Assembly: GCA_965644295.1 (NCBI GenBank)
Contig: CBFFRP010000090.1
Coordinates: forward strand, 62,001-126,000
DNA length: 64,000 bases
Reading direction: 5' to 3'
Source: Paraphysomonas bandaiensis
Lineage: Eukaryota; Protista; Chrysophyceae
Shown: in pieces, positions 8,194-62,032 of the stretch
How the letters are laid out: every line of letters starts with the position of its first letter
How positions within the stretch are numbered: position 1 is the first letter of the stretch
Made by a program: the position numbers and the translations under genes
The notes under the pieces: generated by a model
What the model was told of the DNA's origin: nothing
Seen by the model: the letters and a program-made list of their open reading frames with translations, nothing else
Database searches by the model: none

Positions 8194-11100
8194 TTATAAA
8201 TTAAACAGCGAAGTCACTGCACTCTGAACATGATTTCTAACAACATTTCTAACGTCTATTTCGGAGTCAACAGTATGGTTTGCTAAATTTACACGGTATA
8301 TACGAACTCCATGTGCCTCCGATAAGTACCTATCACGAACTGTATCAAATAAATTACTCCTAGGGTACTGGTGCGTTGGGCCGTCGATTTCGATGTTTAT
8401 CACTCTGCCATCGCCACTGGTGAGGAGTATATCTGCCTCGAACCCGTGAATGTATATGTTACTAGTTACTTTCGCATCCAACCCACAGTCATTTACAAAT
8501 GATTGAATTTCACGCAAAAACAGATCCTGGGTATTTGACTGACTATGCTTGACTTGACAGACACCACGAGTTTCTTTGATAGTAAGTGTGCTTACTTCCC
8601 TCAGAATCTCCACCAACCTACATTTTACATTCTCAGGTATATCTTTCACACCATGTAGAAACAAGTCGACAGATCGCCATAAATCCATCGCCCCTTCATA
8701 TCCCCACAAGGACTGACCAGTGACCTCACATGTGACGTATTCCTGTACATTGGAGGGTACTTTTTCCAGTGCAGAAGACAAAAACATACTAACCGCTACA
8801 TGCTGCGCTGACATGCCCTGAAGGCCATATAGACATTGACTAAGCGTCTGTGGAGGTAGGAGTGACAAGTCAGTTCGAATTCTTGAAGCCAGTAAACCCA
8901 ACACGTCCCTAACCTCCGGGTAGTGACTGGACATGCGCTGCAGACCATACACAGCGATCCCTATCGCTTGAGAACCCAACGGCTCATCACATGACTGCAT
9001 CTTACTGCTTAGAGCTTGCAATACAACACGGACCTCTGGATATTCGCTACTCATACCCTGAAGTCCATAAAATGCTGCACCAATCTCTGCAGGACGAAGA
9101 GCATCACTACATTGAAATATCTTAGGAGCAAGTGCAACTAGCATGTCGCGTACTTCAGAGTGACTGCTACACATGCCTTGCATACCATACAGCGCACTAC
9201 TAATATGCTGCGATTCCAGTGCACCAGGGCTAGCAGATACGTGCCCTACGAGCACACTCAGTAGTGTTCGCACTTCAGGATGATAACTAGTAAACTTTTG
9301 CATACCATACAGGGCATTCCCGACACTACAAGATGATATACGCTCCGTACACTGTCGTATCTTGTCACTCAATACAAGCACTATTTCCCTAACCTCCGGG
9401 TAACAACTAGACATACGCCTCAAGCCATAAAGCGCACTTCCAACACCCTGCTCATCAAGACCCTCACTGGACTGTTTAATCCTCTTGCTTAGACAACGAA
9501 GAAGATCCCTGACCTCCTCGTGGGTAGCAGACATACTCTGTAAACCGTACACAGCGATTCCCATCTCCTGTGGGCTCATATTGCCAGAAACCCTATCGAT
9601 ATGAGGAGTCAAATGAGATATCAGAATCCGAACTTCCTCGTAGTCACTTGACATTCCCTGGAGCCCATAGAGTGCATTCGATACAGCCTGAGGAGTGAGC
9701 TCTTGTTGGAAAGACTTGATCTTTTCCCCAAGTGATCTCACCAATTCACGGACCTCTGTGTGGTCACTGGTCATGGACTGCAGTCCATACAGGGCATTGC
9801 CAATCTCTTGAGGCCGAAGGGAATCACCACTATCATGCATACATCCACATAAAGCAGATAATAACTCTCGGACTTCTTTATACTGAGAGGACATTCTACG
9901 CATACCATACAATGCGTTTCCGATCGCTTGAGACTTCAGTGGTTCAGGAGATGCGGCTATTTTCGTTGTGAGTGCTGTCAGTAACTCCCGCACTTCAGGA
10001 TAATCAGTCGACATATTCTGAAGTCCGTATATCGCACTACCAATTTCCAGAGAACTCAATGCTTGATTCCCAAGCAGTATAAGTCTCGTCAATATAGGTA
10101 TAACCTGCCTAACTTCTGTGTGGTCACTGGTCATGGACTGCAGTCCATACAGGGCATTGCCAATCTCTTGAGGCCGAAGGGAATCACCACTATCATGCAT
10201 ACATCCACATAAAGCAGATAATAACTCTCGGACTTCTTTATACTGAGAGGACATTCTACGCATACCATACAATGCGTTTCCGATCGCCTGAGAGTTCAGT
10301 GGTTCAGGAGATGCGGCTATTTTTGTTGTGAGTGCTGTCAGTAACTCCCGCACTTCAGGATAATCAGTCGACATATTCTGAAGTCCGTATAAAGCATTAC
10401 CAAGTATCTGTGAATCTATTATTGCCTTAGATGAATAAATACGACTAGTTAGTGCAGATATTAGTTCCCGGACTTCACTGTGTTCGCAAGACATCTTTCG
10501 CATACCATATAGCACATTTCCTATGGCCTGGGCACTCAGTGGTTCGGTTGAAGATGATATATTTTTCGTGAGCGCAGATAAGAGAGAAACAACTTCTGAA
10601 TGACTAGAAGACATGTTGCGGAGGCCAAATAGAGCACCAGATATTTCCAGATCGTTCAGTGGTTCACTACACGACAAAATCTTTGTAGACAAGGAATGTG
10701 CTAATGCACAGACTTCTGCATGTTCACTTGACATGCCACGCAGTCCATACAATGCGCTAGCAAGAGAATACCGCTCCATAACAGCATCGCTCTCAATAAC
10801 ACATTGAGTCAAGATAAAAACCAATTGACGGACCTCAGAAGAATACGAAGACATATTTTTCAATCCATACAGAGAACACCCTATATCTTGACCACTAAAA
10901 TTACCCGAAACCGAAGAAAATTTCGAGGACAATATGGCCAACAAAGAACGCACCTCAGAAGATTCACAAGACATGTTCTGAAATCCAAACAAAGACTTTG
11001 ATAAAGTATACGAATGAAATAAATCATCACAATCGGATATCAGGGGTGTTAGTGCAGCCAGCATATCGCGTACTTCAGAGTGACTGCTACACATGCCTTG

Positions 11101-12492
11101 CATACCATACAGGGCATTTCCGACACTGCGTGATGATATACGCTCCGTACACTGTCGTATCTTGTCACTCAATACAAGCACTATTTCTCTAACCTCCGGG
11201 TAACAACTAGACATACGCCTCAAGCCATAAAGCGCACTTCCAACACCCTGACCATCAAGACCCTCACTGGACTGTTTAATCCTCTTGCTTAGACAACGAA
11301 GAAGATCCCTGACCTCCTCGTGGGTAGCAGACATACTCTGTAAGCCATACATAGCGTTACTCATCTCCTGTGGACTCATATTGCCAGAAACCCTATCGAT
11401 ATGAGGAGTCAAATGAGATATCAAAATCCGAACTTCCTCGTAGTCACTTGACATTCCCTGGAGCCCATAGAGTGCATTCGATACAGCCTGAGGAGTGAGC
11501 TCTTGTTGGAAAGACTTGATCTTTTCCCCAAGTGATCTCACCAATTCACGGACCTCTGTGTGGTCACTGGTCATGGACTGCAGTCCATACAGAGCATTGC
11601 CAATCTCTTGAGGCCGAAGGGAATCACCACTATCATGCATACATCCACATAAAGCAGATAATAACTCTCGGACTTCTTTATACTGAGAGGACATTCTACG
11701 CATACCATACAATGCGTTTCCGATCGCCTGAGAGTTCAGTGGTTCAGGAGATGCGGCTATTTTTGTTGTGAGTGCTGTCAGTAACTCCCGCACTTCAGGA
11801 TAATCAGTCGACATATTCTGAAGTCCGTATAGTGCGCTTCCTATATTTCTGGCTGGTAATACATCTACACACCCTCTGACGTTTTGATTTATAGAAGATA
11901 TGAGACTACGCACTTCGCTATGTCGACTAGACATTCCTCGCAAACCGTACAATCCGTTACCCACTGCCTGTGCACTGAAAGCATCGTCACACTGTGATAT
12001 CCTATACGAAAAAACACTGAGAAATTTTCTAACATCCTCATATTCGGAAGACATTCCCTTCAATGAGTATAATATCGTCCCAATGTTCCGTTCATTGAGT
12101 TTAGTCGGTATACGTTCCATATGAATAGTCAATGCTCGCAACAACTCCATTGCACCGGAACTACGACTAGATAAGACACGCAGAGCATTAAGAGACTTAT
12201 ACACATCTCCTGCAGCCATTTTCTCGCAAGTCATCAGCTCCTTTGCGATACTGCAGAGATTCAACGCAGTGATGTGTGTGTTCCTGTACCCAAAGCCGTG
12301 TAAAACTGTAGCCAGGGCGGGTATGTCGCTATTCTCTATCAGCTCCTTCAGCTGACCACCAACAGGCAATCTCTTCTTGGTATTTGGAGGACGTCGTCGG
12401 GATGTGACAGTGGAAGCACTGCTACATAGTCGTCTGGTCAGAGAGATCGAATAGGCTCTGCATGGAGACCGCCTTAATATGATTGATAGCAT
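8194..12492 (-). CDS. Helical-repeat/RAP-domain protein A: 28 x 40-aa OPR-like repeats plus RAP domain, putatively mitochondrial
   Basis: Intronless 1432-aa ORF (ATG at 12492; the ORF-track start 12495 is GTG). Arg/Ser-rich, acid-free N-terminus. Repeat consensus LxxQxIGNALYGLQxMSSxxxEVRxLLxxLxxKI. C-terminal HGFEADILL...INIEIDGPTHQY...RDRYL...GVRIYRV is a RAP-type signature. Confidence 0.85.
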   Translation of the reverse strand: MLSIILRRSPCRAYSISLTRRLCSSASTVTSRRRPPNTKKRLPVGGQLKELIENSDIPALATVLHGFGYRNTHITALNLCSIAKELMTCEKMAAGDVYKSLNALRVLSSRSSGAMELLRALTIHMERIPTKLNERNIGTILYSLKGMSSEYEDVRKFLSVFSYRISQCDDAFSAQAVGNGLYGLRGMSSRHSEVRSLISSINQNVRGCVDVLPARNIGSALYGLQNMSTDYPEVRELLTALTTKIAASPEPLNSQAIGNALYGMRRMSSQYKEVRELLSALCGCMHDSGDSLRPQEIGNALYGLQSMTSDHTEVRELVRSLGEKIKSFQQELTPQAVSNALYGLQGMSSDYEEVRILISHLTPHIDRVSGNMSPQEMSNAMYGLQSMSATHEEVRDLLRCLSKRIKQSSEGLDGQGVGSALYGLRRMSSCYPEVREIVLVLSDKIRQCTERISSRSVGNALYGMQGMCSSHSEVRDMLAALTPLISDCDDLFHSYTLSKSLFGFQNMSCESSEVRSLLAILSSKFSSVSGNFSGQDIGCSLYGLKNMSSYSSEVRQLVFILTQCVIESDAVMERYSLASALYGLRGMSSEHAEVCALAHSLSTKILSCSEPLNDLEISGALFGLRNMSSSHSEVVSLLSALTKNISSSTEPLSAQAIGNVLYGMRKMSCEHSEVRELISALTSRIYSSKAIIDSQILGNALYGLQNMSTDYPEVRELLTALTTKIAASPEPLNSQAIGNALYGMRRMSSQYKEVRELLSALCGCMHDSGDSLRPQEIGNALYGLQSMTSDHTEVRQVIPILTRLILLGNQALSSLEIGSAIYGLQNMSTDYPEVRELLTALTTKIAASPEPLKSQAIGNALYGMRRMSSQYKEVRELLSALCGCMHDSGDSLRPQEIGNALYGLQSMTSDHTEVRELVRSLGEKIKSFQQELTPQAVSNALYGLQGMSSDYEEVRILISHLTPHIDRVSGNMSPQEMGIAVYGLQSMSATHEEVRDLLRCLSKRIKQSSEGLDEQGVGSALYGLRRMSSCYPEVREIVLVLSDKIRQCTERISSCSVGNALYGMQKFTSYHPEVRTLLSVLVGHVSASPGALESQHISSALYGMQGMCSSHSEVRDMLVALAPKIFQCSDALRPAEIGAAFYGLQGMSSEYPEVRVVLQALSSKMQSCDEPLGSQAIGIAVYGLQRMSSHYPEVRDVLGLLASRIRTDLSLLPPQTLSQCLYGLQGMSAQHVAVSMFLSSALEKVPSNVQEYVTCEVTGQSLWGYEGAMDLWRSVDLFLHGVKDIPENVKCRLVEILREVSTLTIKETRGVCQVKHSQSNTQDLFLREIQSFVNDCGLDAKVTSNIYIHGFEADILLTSGDGRVINIEIDGPTHQYPRSNLFDTVRDRYLSEAHGVRIYRVNLANHTVDSEIDVRNVVRNHVQSAVTSLFNL
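8740..12099 (-). repeat. Coding tandem array of 28 x 120-bp units with near-identical duplicated blocks
   Basis: Exact 40-aa periodicity. Identical blocks recur at offsets of 360, 1440 and 1800 bp (e.g. near-identical shadow ORFs at 9732 and 11532). Confidence 0.95.
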
Positions 12493-13039
12493 CACAGTTA
12501 CTTATGAAACCCTCGCATCATATCATCATATTCATATACTTATATTCATGTGCATTGATTGGATATCGCCCTCTCACTTCGTCTTCATTGTCCGTGAAGT
12601 TTAAATAGTCTCATATACAGCAGTACATATGCAGATGTACTCTTAGCGTATATGTGTACTATCGTATAGATGTGCAGGCTATATGCGGCTATCATCCTCC
12701 ATCAAATTATTTTTTAGGGTGGACTGAATACCCTCGTAGTACACTATACTATGTACTGCTAGACTCATATGTAGAGTAGTACGGTATGTATGCGGTGGTA
12801 CTGTACAGTGAGCGGGTTGCTGACACACACTGGAGCTGCTCTTAATAGAGCGACTGGTTATATATATACCACACCAGCTCGCTATGCATATTGAGGCTAT
12901 CTACATCATGTCTTGATATGCAGTAGAGTATATATCTCAATGATTCCATCGCACTGGTGACTCATACATACATATCATGAGAGACGACTGTCACTGGTAG
13001 ACGACATATAGACATAGATATATACTGACCACTGGCTAT
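12493..13039. promoter_or_regulatory. Putative bidirectional promoter of the repeat/RAP gene pair
   Basis: 547-bp spacer between divergent ATGs, rich in alternating purine-pyrimidine tracts (tatatg, gtgtac, catac) like the other divergent spacers in the window. Confidence 0.5.
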
Positions 13040-15526
13040 ATGTGGCGCATTACAGTCAGATTGAAACGGACGACTCTGCCGACGAGACGAATTAATAGTT
13101 CAATCAAGAAGGTTGCCAAACAAAAGAATACTAGAAGCATCCCTCCTGCTATAGGGAACATACTTGATGACATTGTCGGAAAGAAAGACTTGTCTGCCAT
13201 TGCTTCATTGCTTTATTCTTGTGGAAAGAGTAAATTTGCACTTCCAAACCATGTTCTATACAGCATTGCAAGAGAAGTGCATAACTGTGCCCCAGTTACC
13301 AGTGTCAGTGATATTGACAAGTCGTTTAACGCCCTCCGTGTCTTATCCAGTCGTAGTCCCGGTGCAATGGAGTTGTTGCGAGCATTGAGCATTCGTCTTG
13401 AGCGGGTGTCAACCAAACTCACACAACGGAACATTGGGTCGATATTATTTTCATTGAAGGGTATGTCTTCCGAATATGAGGATGTTAGAAAGCTTCTTAG
13501 TATACTATCCGAGAAAATATATCTCTGTGAAGATAATTTTAGTGCACAAGCAGTGGGTAACGGGTTGTACGGTTTGCGAGGAATGTCTTGTAGTCATCCG
13601 GAGGTCAGGAAGTTACTAACAGCGCTTACTACCAGAGTAGCCGCATCATCTGAGCCACTTAACTCTCAGGCGATCGGAAACGCATTGTATGGCATGCGCA
13701 GAATGTCTTCAGAGTATAAAGAAGTCCGTGAACTGTTGTCTGTTCTTACTATAGGTATCGATGCTAGTACAGATATCATGCGAACACAGGAAATCGGAAA
13801 CGCGATATATGGCCTTCAAGGAATGTCAAGCGAGGAAAATGAAGTCCGTAGGCTACTGGCAGCAATAAAACGAAAACTTGATAACTGCAATGGATTATTT
13901 CGGCCTCAAGAGATTGGCAATGCTCTGTATGGACTGCAGTCCATGACCAGTGACCACACAGAGGTCCGTGAATTGGTGAGATCACTTGGGGAAAAGATCA
14001 AGTCTTTCCAACAAGAGCTCACTCCTCAGGCTGTATCGAATGCACTCTATGGGCTCCAGGGAATGTCAAGTGACTACGAGGAAGTTCGGATTTTGATATC
14101 TCATTTGACTCCTCATATCGATAGGGTTTCTGGCAATATGAGTCCACAGGAGATGAGTAACGCTATGTATGGCTTACAGAGTATGTCTGCTACCCACGAG
14201 GAGGTCAGGGATCTTCTTCGTTGTCTAAGCAAGAGGATTAAACAGTCCAGTGAGGGTCTTGATGGTCAGGGTGTTGGAAGTGCGCTTTATGGCTTGAGGC
14301 GTATGTCTAGTTGTTACCCGGAGGTTAGGGAAATAGTGCTTGTATTGAGTGACAAGATACGACAGTGTACGGAGCGTATATCGTCACGCAGTGTCGGGAA
14401 TGCCCTGTATGGTATGCAGAAGTTTACTAGTTATCATCCTGAAGTGCGAACACTACTGAGTGTGCTCGTAGGGCACGTATCTGCTAGCCCTGGTGCACTG
14501 GAATCGCAGCATATTAGTAGTGCGCTGTATGGTATGCAAGGCATGTGTAGCAGTCACTCTGAAGTACGCGACATGCTAGTTGCACTTATTCCCAAGATAT
14601 TTCAATGTAGTGATACTCTTCGTCCTGCAGAGATTGGTGCAGCATTTTATGGACTTCAGGGTATGAGTAGCGAATATCCAGAGGTCCGTGTTGTATTGCA
14701 AGCTCTAAGCAGTAAGATGCAGTCATGTGATGAGCCGTTGGGTTCTCAAGCGATAGGGATCGCTGTGTATGGTCTGCAGCGCATGTCCAGTCACTACCCG
14801 GAGGTTAGGGACGTGTTGGGTTTACTGGCTTCAAGAATTCGAACTGACTTGTCACTCCTACCTCCACAGACGCTTAGTCAATGTCTATATGGCCTTCAGG
14901 GCATGTCAGCGCAGCATGTAGCGGTTAGTATGTTTTTGTCTTCTGCACTGGAAAAAGTACCCTCCAATGTACAGGAATACGTCACATGTGAGGTCACTGG
15001 TCAGTCCTTGTGGGGATATGAAGGGGCGATGGATTTATGGCGATCTGTCGACTTGTTTCTACATGGTGTGAAAGATATACCTGAGAATGTAAAATGTAGG
15101 TTGGTGGAGATTCTGAGGGAAGTAAGCACACTTACTATCAAAGAAACTCGTGGTGTCTGTCAAGTCAAGCATAGTCAGTCGAATACCCAGGATCTGTTTT
15201 TGCGTGAAATTCAATCATTTGTAAATGACTGTGGGTTGGATGCGAAAGTAACTAGTAACATATACATTCACGGGTTCGAGGCAGATATACTCCTCACCAG
15301 TGGCGATGGCAGAGTGATAAACATCGAAATCGACGGCCCAACGCACCAGTACCCTAGGAGTAATTTATTTGATACAGTTCGTGATAGGTACTTATCGGAG
15401 GCACATGGAGTTCGTATATACCGTGTAAATTTGGCGAAGATATTTTATGGCTCCAACGTAGACGTTAGAAATTCTGTTAGAGATAAGATTCGGAGACTGT
15501 GTATTGAACCATTTTATAATTCATAG
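13040..15526 (+). CDS. Helical-repeat/RAP-domain protein B: 13 x 40-aa repeats (13418-14977) plus RAP domain, putatively mitochondrial
   Basis: Intronless 828-aa ORF. Basic presequence-like N-terminus (MWRITVRLKRTTLPTRR). Same repeat consensus and RAP core (about 15254-15432) as protein A. Confidence 0.85.
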   Translation: MWRITVRLKRTTLPTRRINSSIKKVAKQKNTRSIPPAIGNILDDIVGKKDLSAIASLLYSCGKSKFALPNHVLYSIAREVHNCAPVTSVSDIDKSFNALRVLSSRSPGAMELLRALSIRLERVSTKLTQRNIGSILFSLKGMSSEYEDVRKLLSILSEKIYLCEDNFSAQAVGNGLYGLRGMSCSHPEVRKLLTALTTRVAASSEPLNSQAIGNALYGMRRMSSEYKEVRELLSVLTIGIDASTDIMRTQEIGNAIYGLQGMSSEENEVRRLLAAIKRKLDNCNGLFRPQEIGNALYGLQSMTSDHTEVRELVRSLGEKIKSFQQELTPQAVSNALYGLQGMSSDYEEVRILISHLTPHIDRVSGNMSPQEMSNAMYGLQSMSATHEEVRDLLRCLSKRIKQSSEGLDGQGVGSALYGLRRMSSCYPEVREIVLVLSDKIRQCTERISSRSVGNALYGMQKFTSYHPEVRTLLSVLVGHVSASPGALESQHISSALYGMQGMCSSHSEVRDMLVALIPKIFQCSDTLRPAEIGAAFYGLQGMSSEYPEVRVVLQALSSKMQSCDEPLGSQAIGIAVYGLQRMSSHYPEVRDVLGLLASRIRTDLSLLPPQTLSQCLYGLQGMSAQHVAVSMFLSSALEKVPSNVQEYVTCEVTGQSLWGYEGAMDLWRSVDLFLHGVKDIPENVKCRLVEILREVSTLTIKETRGVCQVKHSQSNTQDLFLREIQSFVNDCGLDAKVTSNIYIHGFEADILLTSGDGRVINIEIDGPTHQYPRSNLFDTVRDRYLSEAHGVRIYRVNLAKIFYGSNVDVRNSVRDKIRRLCIEPFYNS

Positions 15527-61504: not shown

Positions 61505-62032
61505 CTACCGACGAGCGAGAATAGGGCACAAGAAAAATACATTAGCCAACCGTATGGGTTCCGCAAATTCATTCAAAAATAGCGCTACAGCAAATGTTCC
61601 AATGCGTGGGTTTTGCTCTATTGAAGCTCTAATTGATGTCGATTTGTCACCAGAGTCTGGAAGATATTCAATTGCCTACACAGATATCATCAGGCTGATA
61701 AAGTACAATGGTTTATAAAATACCTTGTTCAATAACTCCGAGTAACTGAAGCCAATTAATGAGCAGTCAAACATACCGCTATCCAAACCAAAAAACAGTA
61801 TTCCTAATGTGGTTAAATACGTCCCTGCGTACACGCCAATAGCAATGTATCCATACTTGGACCACATTTCAGAAATATTTTTCTTCATATCGGAGAGTGT
61901 GTATGATTTATGTCTGCGCTGTGTGTGTGCTGTGCAGCTGGCCTGAATTAACGTCCCTCCTATAGAACTGTGACCACTGCCTCGTAAAGCACGTCCCATA
62001 CGACAGGCGTGTAAACACTGTCGAGTTAACAT
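61505..62032 (-). CDS. DUF1279/FAM210-like mitochondrial membrane protein (2 exons)
   Basis: Presequence-like N-terminus; KYGYIAIGVYAGTYLTTLGILFFGLDSG; second exon GTFAVALFLNEFAEPIRLA...PILARR*. Confidence 0.75.

Follow-up and report, generated by a model that had tools for sequence, protein, structure and literature searches.

Clustered substitutions in one of two duplicated blocks of a 40-residue repeat gene from Paraphysomonas bandaiensis

A head-to-head pair of 40-residue repeat genes

The locus described here is located in a 64,000-nucleotide stretch of DNA from the chrysophyte Paraphysomonas bandaiensis (contig CBFFRP010000090.1 of assembly GCA_965644295.1, forward-strand positions 62,001 to 126,000), which is called the window and whose own numbering is used throughout. 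It contains two genes for tandem-repeat proteins, designated gene A and gene B (Table 1). In gene A an R-, S- and T-rich N-terminal stretch of approximately 170 residues precedes about 28 tandem repeats, the 27 successive anchor spacings of which are every one exactly 40 amino acids long and gapless. Gene B is situated 500 bases upstream of gene A in divergent orientation, and its arm from 13899 to 15438 is an inverted copy, 99% identical, of 8279-9818 of gene A. Both open reading frames (ORFs) are intact. At their N-termini both proteins have many R, S, T and K but no acidic residues, and by their composition these stretches look like a mitochondrial presequence. The repeats of genes A and B are denoted R and B, respectively; the numbers used for R are one lower than those in a preliminary description of this DNA.

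The ORF tool gave GTG as the first codon of gene A (12490-12495). The codon after it is ATG, which is likely to be the start of the gene. At the other end, the 99% identity between genes A and B stops sharply within the last helix of the nuclease-fold domain (8195-8278 versus 15439-15523). The final 28 codons or so are unrelated, so that the two proteins have different C-terminal tails.

The fold of the protein was modelled on gene B with AlphaFold2 (pLDDT 92.3, pTM 0.89). In this model each repeat consists of a 9-residue helix A at positions 4-12, a loop at positions 13-21 (G-L-Q-G-M-S-S...), a 16-residue helix B at positions 22-37 and an inter-repeat linker from position 38 to position 3 of the next repeat. 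The tandem repeats of 40 amino acids and the paired antiparallel helices, stacked as an alpha-solenoid, are features of the octotricopeptide repeat (OPR) type. The C-terminal 142 residues were modelled as a PD-(D/E)XK domain, and the nuclease fold was assigned to gene A by way of this near-identical domain. According to the OPR literature, the presumed determinant of specificity lies in the first helix of the repeat together with the three preceding residues (PMC13126933). By analogy helix A is therefore likely to be the RNA-reading helix.

Table 1. Positions of the genes, repeat blocks and clustered changes in the window
Feature	Position	Strand	Description
Gene A	8194..12495	minus	ORF of 1433 amino acids; 40-residue repeats followed by a modelled RAP/Vsr-like nuclease fold
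Gene B	13040..15526	plus	828 amino acids, 13 repeats, C-terminal domain as in gene A; head-to-head paralogue
Block A	11098..11829	minus	R2 codon 12 to R8 codon 15; state common to gene B and R14-R15
Block B	9298..10029	minus	R17 codon 12 to R23 codon 15; holds all four amino acid-changing events
Third copy	13899..14419	plus	Gene B, B4 codon 2 to B8 codon 15; matches R4-R8a/R19-R23a
Partial copy	10117..10389	minus	R14 codon 12 to R16 codon 22; copy of R2b-R4a
R18 cluster	9928..9934	minus	AAC to AAG (N3K, 9934) and CAG to CAA (9928), 6 nt apart
R21 patch	9544..9561	minus	6 substitutions in 18 nt; S8G, N9I, M11V
R22 double substitution	9451..9452	minus	Tandem change, GGT to GAG; G4E
R23 cluster	9328..9331	minus	3 substitutions in 4 nt, TCA CGC to TCT TGT; R5C and a synonymous change
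Further cluster	9124..9129	minus	Gene A versus gene B, R24/B9 codons 32-33, outside helix A
R26 codons 8-13	8944..8961	minus	GGG ATC GCT GTG TAT GGT, GIAVYG; 16/18 bases of the patch
B11 codons 8-13	14756..14773	plus	Gene B; identical to R26 codons 8-13; second candidate donor

Changes confined to one of the duplicated blocks

Blocks A and B of gene A, each 732 nt long, differ at 19 bases (97.4% identity). Isolated silent differences amount to about 0.7-3% around the sites of interest, and upon this background block B carries four events in which changes are crowded together, namely two in 7 nt (R18), six in 18 nt (R21), two adjacent ones (R22) and three in 4 nt (R23). In the R21 patch AGT AAC GCT ATG TAT GGC was replaced by GGA ATC GCT GTG TAC GGT. 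The silent part of this replacement comprises the codons TAT to TAC and GGC to GGT and the synonymous third base of GGA, and another synonymous change, AGT to AGC, was found at 9574, 13 nt upstream of the patch. The silent changes in R23 are TCA to TCT and the third base of TGT. Synonymous base changes thus accompany three of the four events, whereas the R22 GGT-to-GAG change includes none unambiguously. The preliminary description had given all these codon changes correctly for the minus-strand ORF 8194-12495, and had placed the patch exactly at 9544-9561 with its six substitutions and two synonymous codons.

Six changes within one 18-nt window are not expected from a random placement of the differences (permutation P=0.0004), and the flanks of the patch are 99% identical. 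Each event alters one to three residues within repeat positions 3-11, that is the N-cap and the body of helix A. Repeat positions 1-13 contain 16 of the 19 differing bases. As the bases within a cluster are not independent, the differences were counted by events, which gave 6 of 9 (P=0.04). All four amino acid-changing events are located at positions 3-11, with P=0.003 for a pre-set window and 0.04 when the post hoc choice of the window is allowed for. When the positions were weighted by the variation in the family, P was about 0.004 for four out of four events and about 0.04 for four out of six, the two added events being gene A/gene B differences. The claim that the changes are restricted to the first 10 residues of a repeat held for three of the four events; M11V at position 11 falls outside by one. 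A further cluster distinguishes gene A from gene B (GCT CCT versus ATT CCC, A/I at codon 32), with an A/T difference at R25 codon 1 (9102) next to it.

Two more copies of parts of the block, absent from the preliminary description, were found, i.e. the third copy in gene B and the partial copy R14-R16. The third copy is separated from block B by 17 bases and from block A by 4 synonymous bases, with 0 replacement differences. In a three-way comparison over 520 nt, 15 bases were unique to block B (three clusters and three isolated silent sites), whereas block A and gene B had 2 unique bases each, all of them silent. The partial copy is identical to block A across R2b-R3 and has GCC at R16 codon 10 as in block B. 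R3 and R15 are identical, and R18 alone differs from both. Because the extra copies have the amino acid states of block A, block B is the outlier in every segment. The older repeat B2, which is 21% diverged, keeps AAC and CAG at the position of the R18 cluster, which implies that AAG and CAA in R18 are derived. A DNA search with 600 nt for further copies or haplotigs yielded the three known copies and a 71-nt piece, and nothing more. A word-based protein search returned 333 relatives, chrysophyte ones among them. As the best of these were just 33-44% identical, they could not be used as an outgroup for polarity.

The silent differences between the blocks are unevenly distributed as well. The proportion of synonymous differences per synonymous site (pS) was 0.15 at positions 1-13 and 0.028 at positions 14-40, a fivefold difference, and 9 of the 12 synonymous differences occurred in positions 1-13. 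This rise is due to the silent changes that lie within the replacement clusters. Among the other paralogues, 28 independent repeat pairs had 33% of their synonymous differences in positions 1-13, as expected if these were spread evenly, and therefore this part of the repeat is not a general hotspot. Since the silent changes travel with the replacements, multi-nucleotide events are indicated and not point mutations selected independently of each other. Judged from its sequence, the R21 patch is a single complex event and not a series of independent point mutations. Clustered silent and replacement differences between identical flanks, as seen in this patch, are one feature of non-allelic gene conversion.

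Selection was assessed from the ratio of the proportions of nonsynonymous (pN) and synonymous differences (pN/pS, Nei-Gojobori). Between blocks A and B this ratio was 0.17 overall and 0.33 at positions 3-11; between genes A and B it was 0.22 and 0.32, respectively. A ratio above 1 was found in no partition of either comparison. The preliminary description had suggested templated micro-conversion and/or diversifying selection on specificity positions. Its proposal agrees in part with our data, in that the patch behaves as a single complex event, but the pN/pS values of 0.17-0.33 do not support the selective half. Nor is diversifying selection on specificity positions supported by the nearly even nonsynonymous share of positions 3-11 in the family. 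Selection may have retained the clusters, and they were either kept by it or merely tolerated.

The variation in the family as a whole was examined in the 62.5-Mb assembly of 669 contigs, where some 30 separate open frames outside this contig contain matches to the family repeat. For comparison 29 paralogue loci were retrieved. A hidden Markov model built from the repeats of gene A matched 393 repeats in genes A and B together with 27 other ORFs at these loci. Among 352 non-redundant repeats, entropy was high at positions 1, 3-6 and 9, and equally high at 16, 20-22, 26, 29, 32-33, 36-37 and 39-40. In the 28 independent pairs, formed by nearest-neighbour repeats, positions 3-11 accounted for 25% of the nonsynonymous change, compared with 22.5% for an even distribution, and positions 8-9 were among the quieter ones. 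An even spread along the 40 positions had been named as the pattern that would speak against a specificity-related origin. The change is uneven and follows the buried/exposed pattern of both helices, without a focus on the first ten residues.

One paralogue has a conspicuous distribution of its own. This protein, L029 (the C107 paralogue, G000:C107:67500-72500, ORF from base 1138), contains a very regular array of 14 repeats, in which positions 11-28 form a scaffold that hardly varies (LYGLRGMSSEYVEVRELL). Its positions 39-40, 1, 3-6 and 8-10 carry a pN close to the mean pS, and positions 1-10 comprise about 41% of the summed per-position pN. Nowhere else in the genome is a conserved frame combined so clearly with variation at helix-A residues.

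As far as can be read from its sequence, the locus is a mosaic of conversion and crossover in which exchange is ongoing among block A, block B, R14-R16 and gene B. Two junctions were observed in addition to the block ends. Repeat R8 (11023-11142, compared with 9103-9196) is a hybrid. In codons 1-15 it is a young copy of R23a/B8a, in codons 16-40 an older relative (83% identical) of R24's second part. This suggests an old unequal crossover, the first part of which would have been re-homogenised later. Codons 1-12 of repeats B2 (13640-13759) and R3 (11623-11742) are distinguished by 1 of 36 nt, the codons that follow by 24 of 84 nt. The edge of this mosaic lies at the conserved A-L-Y-G motif, where the younger blocks start and stop too.

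Possible origins of the clustered changes

The peptide GIAVYG of the R21 patch recurs in R26 (R27 in the preliminary description), with the codons that had been reported there. It is also present in B11, the twin of R26 in gene B. Both read GGGATCGCTGTGTATGGT and are the nearest sequences to the patch in the genome. The preliminary description had proposed a paralogue outside the window as the probable donor. A search of the whole 62.5-Mb assembly with a 21-mer and an 18-mer, allowing up to two mismatches, retrieved the patch itself, R26 and B11 only. Since the assembly contains no match at this level beyond R26 and B11, a donor outside the window is not supported, and the best candidates are both within it. 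Among 384 family repeats in the genome, G-I-A-V at positions 8-11 was seen in R21, R26 and B11 only. The identity between R26 and R21 is 89% within the patch and 48% outside it. The median for local repeats is 47%, and descent of R21 from R26 as a whole-repeat relative was rejected for this reason. Five sites of the patch differ between R6 and R26. At all five R21 has a new base, which is that of R26 in four cases. A single-tract mosaic-donor test gave P=0.01-0.05 with 34 local donors. The situation resembles ectopic micro gene conversion between tandem repeats, in which a short patch likewise encodes the same peptide as another repeat of the gene; it differs from it in that an exact donor is missing here. 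Taken together, the sequence comparisons are suggestive of templating of the R21 patch.

Our preferred reading, held tentatively with a probability of about 0.45, is that the clusters are recombination-associated complex events in a mosaic locus and that the patch is probably an imperfect copy of a GIAVYG-type helix A. The comparisons show that a 732-nt block of six repeats was duplicated within gene A and that block B alone gained four multi-nucleotide events. These may have arisen as by-products of recombinational repair in a repeat-rich locus, by error-prone synthesis together with either templated copying of short tracts or template switching. A helix A such as that of R26 or B11, copied imperfectly, could have served as the template of the 18-nt patch. 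With helix A as the probable RNA-reading helix, the events would probably retune the RNA specificity of the new block. The farther-reaching version, in which the base-reading helix is rewritten in one step by the copying of an 18-nt 'helix A cassette', so that RNA specificity is reprogrammed module by module, is regarded as quite improbable.

Several observations weigh against a templated, recombination-associated origin. An exact donor of the patch is not present in the assembly. Hamming scans with both states of the four clusters over the window and the 29 paralogue loci revealed no donor, and metagenome contigs had 0 matches to a degenerate 44-nt pattern that allowed for either state of the patch. 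R26 and B11 account for four of the six changes, which leaves GGA (not GGG) and TAC (not TAT) unexplained; the base in TAC is found neither in the recipient nor in the candidate donor. The mosaic-donor test was marginal, P being 0.07-0.09 when all 381 family donors were used and 0.01-0.05 for the local ones. The three shorter clusters have too few bases for a template test, and Cys at position 5, the product of the R23 event, is nearly absent from the family (2/384 repeats). The three-copy tree of R19-R23 is unrooted, so that derivation in block B rests on parsimony there, and the amino acid-changing events number just four to six, which is a small sample. Finally, binding of this protein to RNA, and a part in it for helix A, are inferred.

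Complex changes could also have arisen without a template, as multi-nucleotide mutations made, for instance, by an error-prone repair polymerase and fixed under relaxed constraint in a redundant block, the likeness to R26 being coincidental. That a donor was found for none of the clusters agrees with this, as do the prevalence of tandem or closely spaced substitutions (GT to AG, ACGC to TTGT, and GC to AT at 9128-9129), the position of one cluster outside helix A (codon 32 of R24/B9) and the low pN/pS. Moreover, some family repeat 'explained' random changes equally well in 7-9% of the simulations. However, six changes in 18 nt are a large number for one untemplated event. All five R6/R26-differing sites were altered, four to the R26 base, G-I-A-V is otherwise restricted to R26 and B11, and the test with local donors gave P=0.01-0.05. 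An untemplated origin is considered unlikely. It is less probable still that the clusters are relics, i.e. that block B was formerly far more diverged and was homogenised by conversion, while selection on specificity residues shielded small islands together with the silent sites linked to them. Such a history would require no donor and would fit a locus that is a conversion mosaic (the young/83%-identical older join in R8 and the edge between B2 and R3) and in which silent differences cluster beside the amino acid differences. But B2 has the block A state at R18, so that the R18 cluster is newly derived, the likeness of the patch to R26 is purely local, and islands of 2-18 nt between perfectly identical flanks would need many precisely placed tracts.

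Independent point mutations driven by diversifying selection on base-specifying residues would be in line with the position of all four amino acid-changing events between the blocks. They would also be in line with the pattern in L029, where pN is near the mean pS at positions 1, 3-6 and 8-10 and positions 11-28 are nearly invariant, and with parallels in PPR-RFL genes (PMC5075784) and the Chlamydomonas NCL genes (PMC8635915, PMC8226300). The low pN/pS, also at positions 3-11, argues against this explanation, and so does the family-wide share of positions 3-11 with its quiet positions 8-9. In the six-codon patch three silent changes are present where about 0.1 would be expected from the background pS of approximately 0.03, and such changes cannot have been selected individually. 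We therefore consider it very improbable. Scarcely more credit, and in fact slightly less, is given to the possibility that the variants of block B are assembly or polishing errors. A 7-kb stretch that holds three copies at 97-99% identity and an inverted repeat of 1.5 kb might invite such errors. Yet the variants are all substitutions that keep the frame and both ORFs are intact. In addition, no sequence elsewhere in the genome is identical to the patch, so that mis-mapped reads of R26 or B11 would not yield it, and the flanks of R26 are just 48% identical to those of R21.

Family assignment and related systems

PPR and OPR/HPR organellar proteins are thought to read RNA repeat by repeat. To our knowledge, the recognition code of the OPR type has not been solved. 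The whole model of gene B was closest to organellar RNA-associated solenoids, namely trypanosome RESC and Toxoplasma mitoribosome proteins. When the model of the C-terminal domain was compared by VIA-align, the Z-score was 11.0 both to a homing-endonuclease domain and to a T. gondii mitoribosome protein, 10.4 to the FAST1-FAST2-RAP module of human FASTKD4 (root-mean-square deviation 3.5, 114 aligned), 9.4 to Vsr and 8.5 to a second Toxoplasma mitoribosome protein. The Foldseek matches of this domain agreed with those of VIA-align, every one of them at E above 0.001. Its residues D749, R781, D782 and R795 are nearly invariant. The paralogues that were examined end in a conserved C-terminal motif, the gene B copy of which models as a RAP/Vsr-like fold.

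At the sequence level the family is less easily recognised. The sole Pfam match of the gene A C-terminus was MTES_1575, which was sub-threshold (22.3 bits versus a cut-off of 38.2), and the repeats of gene A matched DUF1601 weakly (16 bits versus a cut-off of 25). Among the homologues, P0051 passed the DUF1601 cut-off with 31 bits and P0082 passed DUF559 (25.4 bits versus 20.6). The literature searched contained no mention of DUF1601. The FAST_1, FAST_2 and RAP profiles had no sequence-level match in this protein. Pfam RAP (PF08373) in particular matched neither the C-terminal 181 amino acids at E up to 1 nor, at E up to 0.01, anything in the whole 62.5-Mb genome. When PDB sequences were searched with a profile, only designed repeat proteins, mL104 and RESC4 were matched, each of them weakly. 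The OPR motif itself is absent from the domain databases and has no Pfam profile (PMC13126933). The protein is not a demonstrable member of Pfam RAP. Its model indicates that it probably works like an organellar RNA-binding protein of the OPR/HPR/FASTK type with a RAP-like nuclease fold. RAP proteins in stramenopiles have been reported to number 0-6 (PMC8190603). As the Pfam RAP profile finds nothing in this genome, such profile-based counts would overlook the family.

One of the two closest parallels is the Chlamydomonas NCL (NCC-like) OPR-RAP cluster, which like the present locus comprises recently duplicated, clustered paralogues in which tandem helical repeats of 38-40 amino acids are followed by a RAP-type nuclease fold. 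According to Boulouis et al. (2015), as reviewed in PMC8635915 and PMC8226300, single repeat-residue changes in NCL proteins can redirect the protein to new organellar RNAs. The locus described here differs from NCL in belonging to a stramenopile and not to a green alga, in lacking a Pfam RAP match in protein and genome, in having repeats of exactly 40 residues with a 9-residue helix A, and in its layout as a head-to-head pair with an internal block duplication, where NCL is an array of 30 genes. The other is provided by the restorer-of-fertility-like (RFL) PPR genes of plants. These encode modular organellar RNA-binding repeat proteins as well, which the products of genes A and B putatively are. 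They have evolved by block duplication, insertion and exchange via unequal crossing-over and gene conversion, and their base-specifying residues are highly variable within otherwise conserved motifs (PMC5075784). Unlike the present genes they have PPR motifs of 35 amino acids, whose code is established (positions 5 and 35), and they lack a nuclease domain. Furthermore, diversifying selection in RFL genes is backed by many genes and species, in contrast to the four to six events with pN/pS below 1 reported here. FASTK and the apicomplexan HPR/RAP proteins share with our model the combination of a helical-repeat N-terminal region and a C-terminal RAP nuclease-like fold, and differ in that the present protein has no FAST_1, FAST_2 or RAP match in its sequence.

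The locus is a further example of the evolution by duplication plus exchange that has been described already for PPR-RFL and NCL genes, in a stramenopile branch where such proteins are unstudied. Given the small sample, it adds no new principle, and it is no proof of selection or of templated copying. The three near-identical copies differ in amino acids only by S8G/N9I/M11V, G4E, R5C and N3K, all in helix A. Blocks A and B, with six residues differing over six repeats, would thus constitute a natural matched pair for the OPR-type code if these residues are base-reading.

Two of the paralogue loci, L044 (G000:C298:9000-13500) and L045 (G000:C473:1000-4784), had identical search scores and represent the same paralogue. 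The former is located on a contig of 689 kb and the latter on one of 4.8 kb, which is probably a haplotig or an assembly duplicate.

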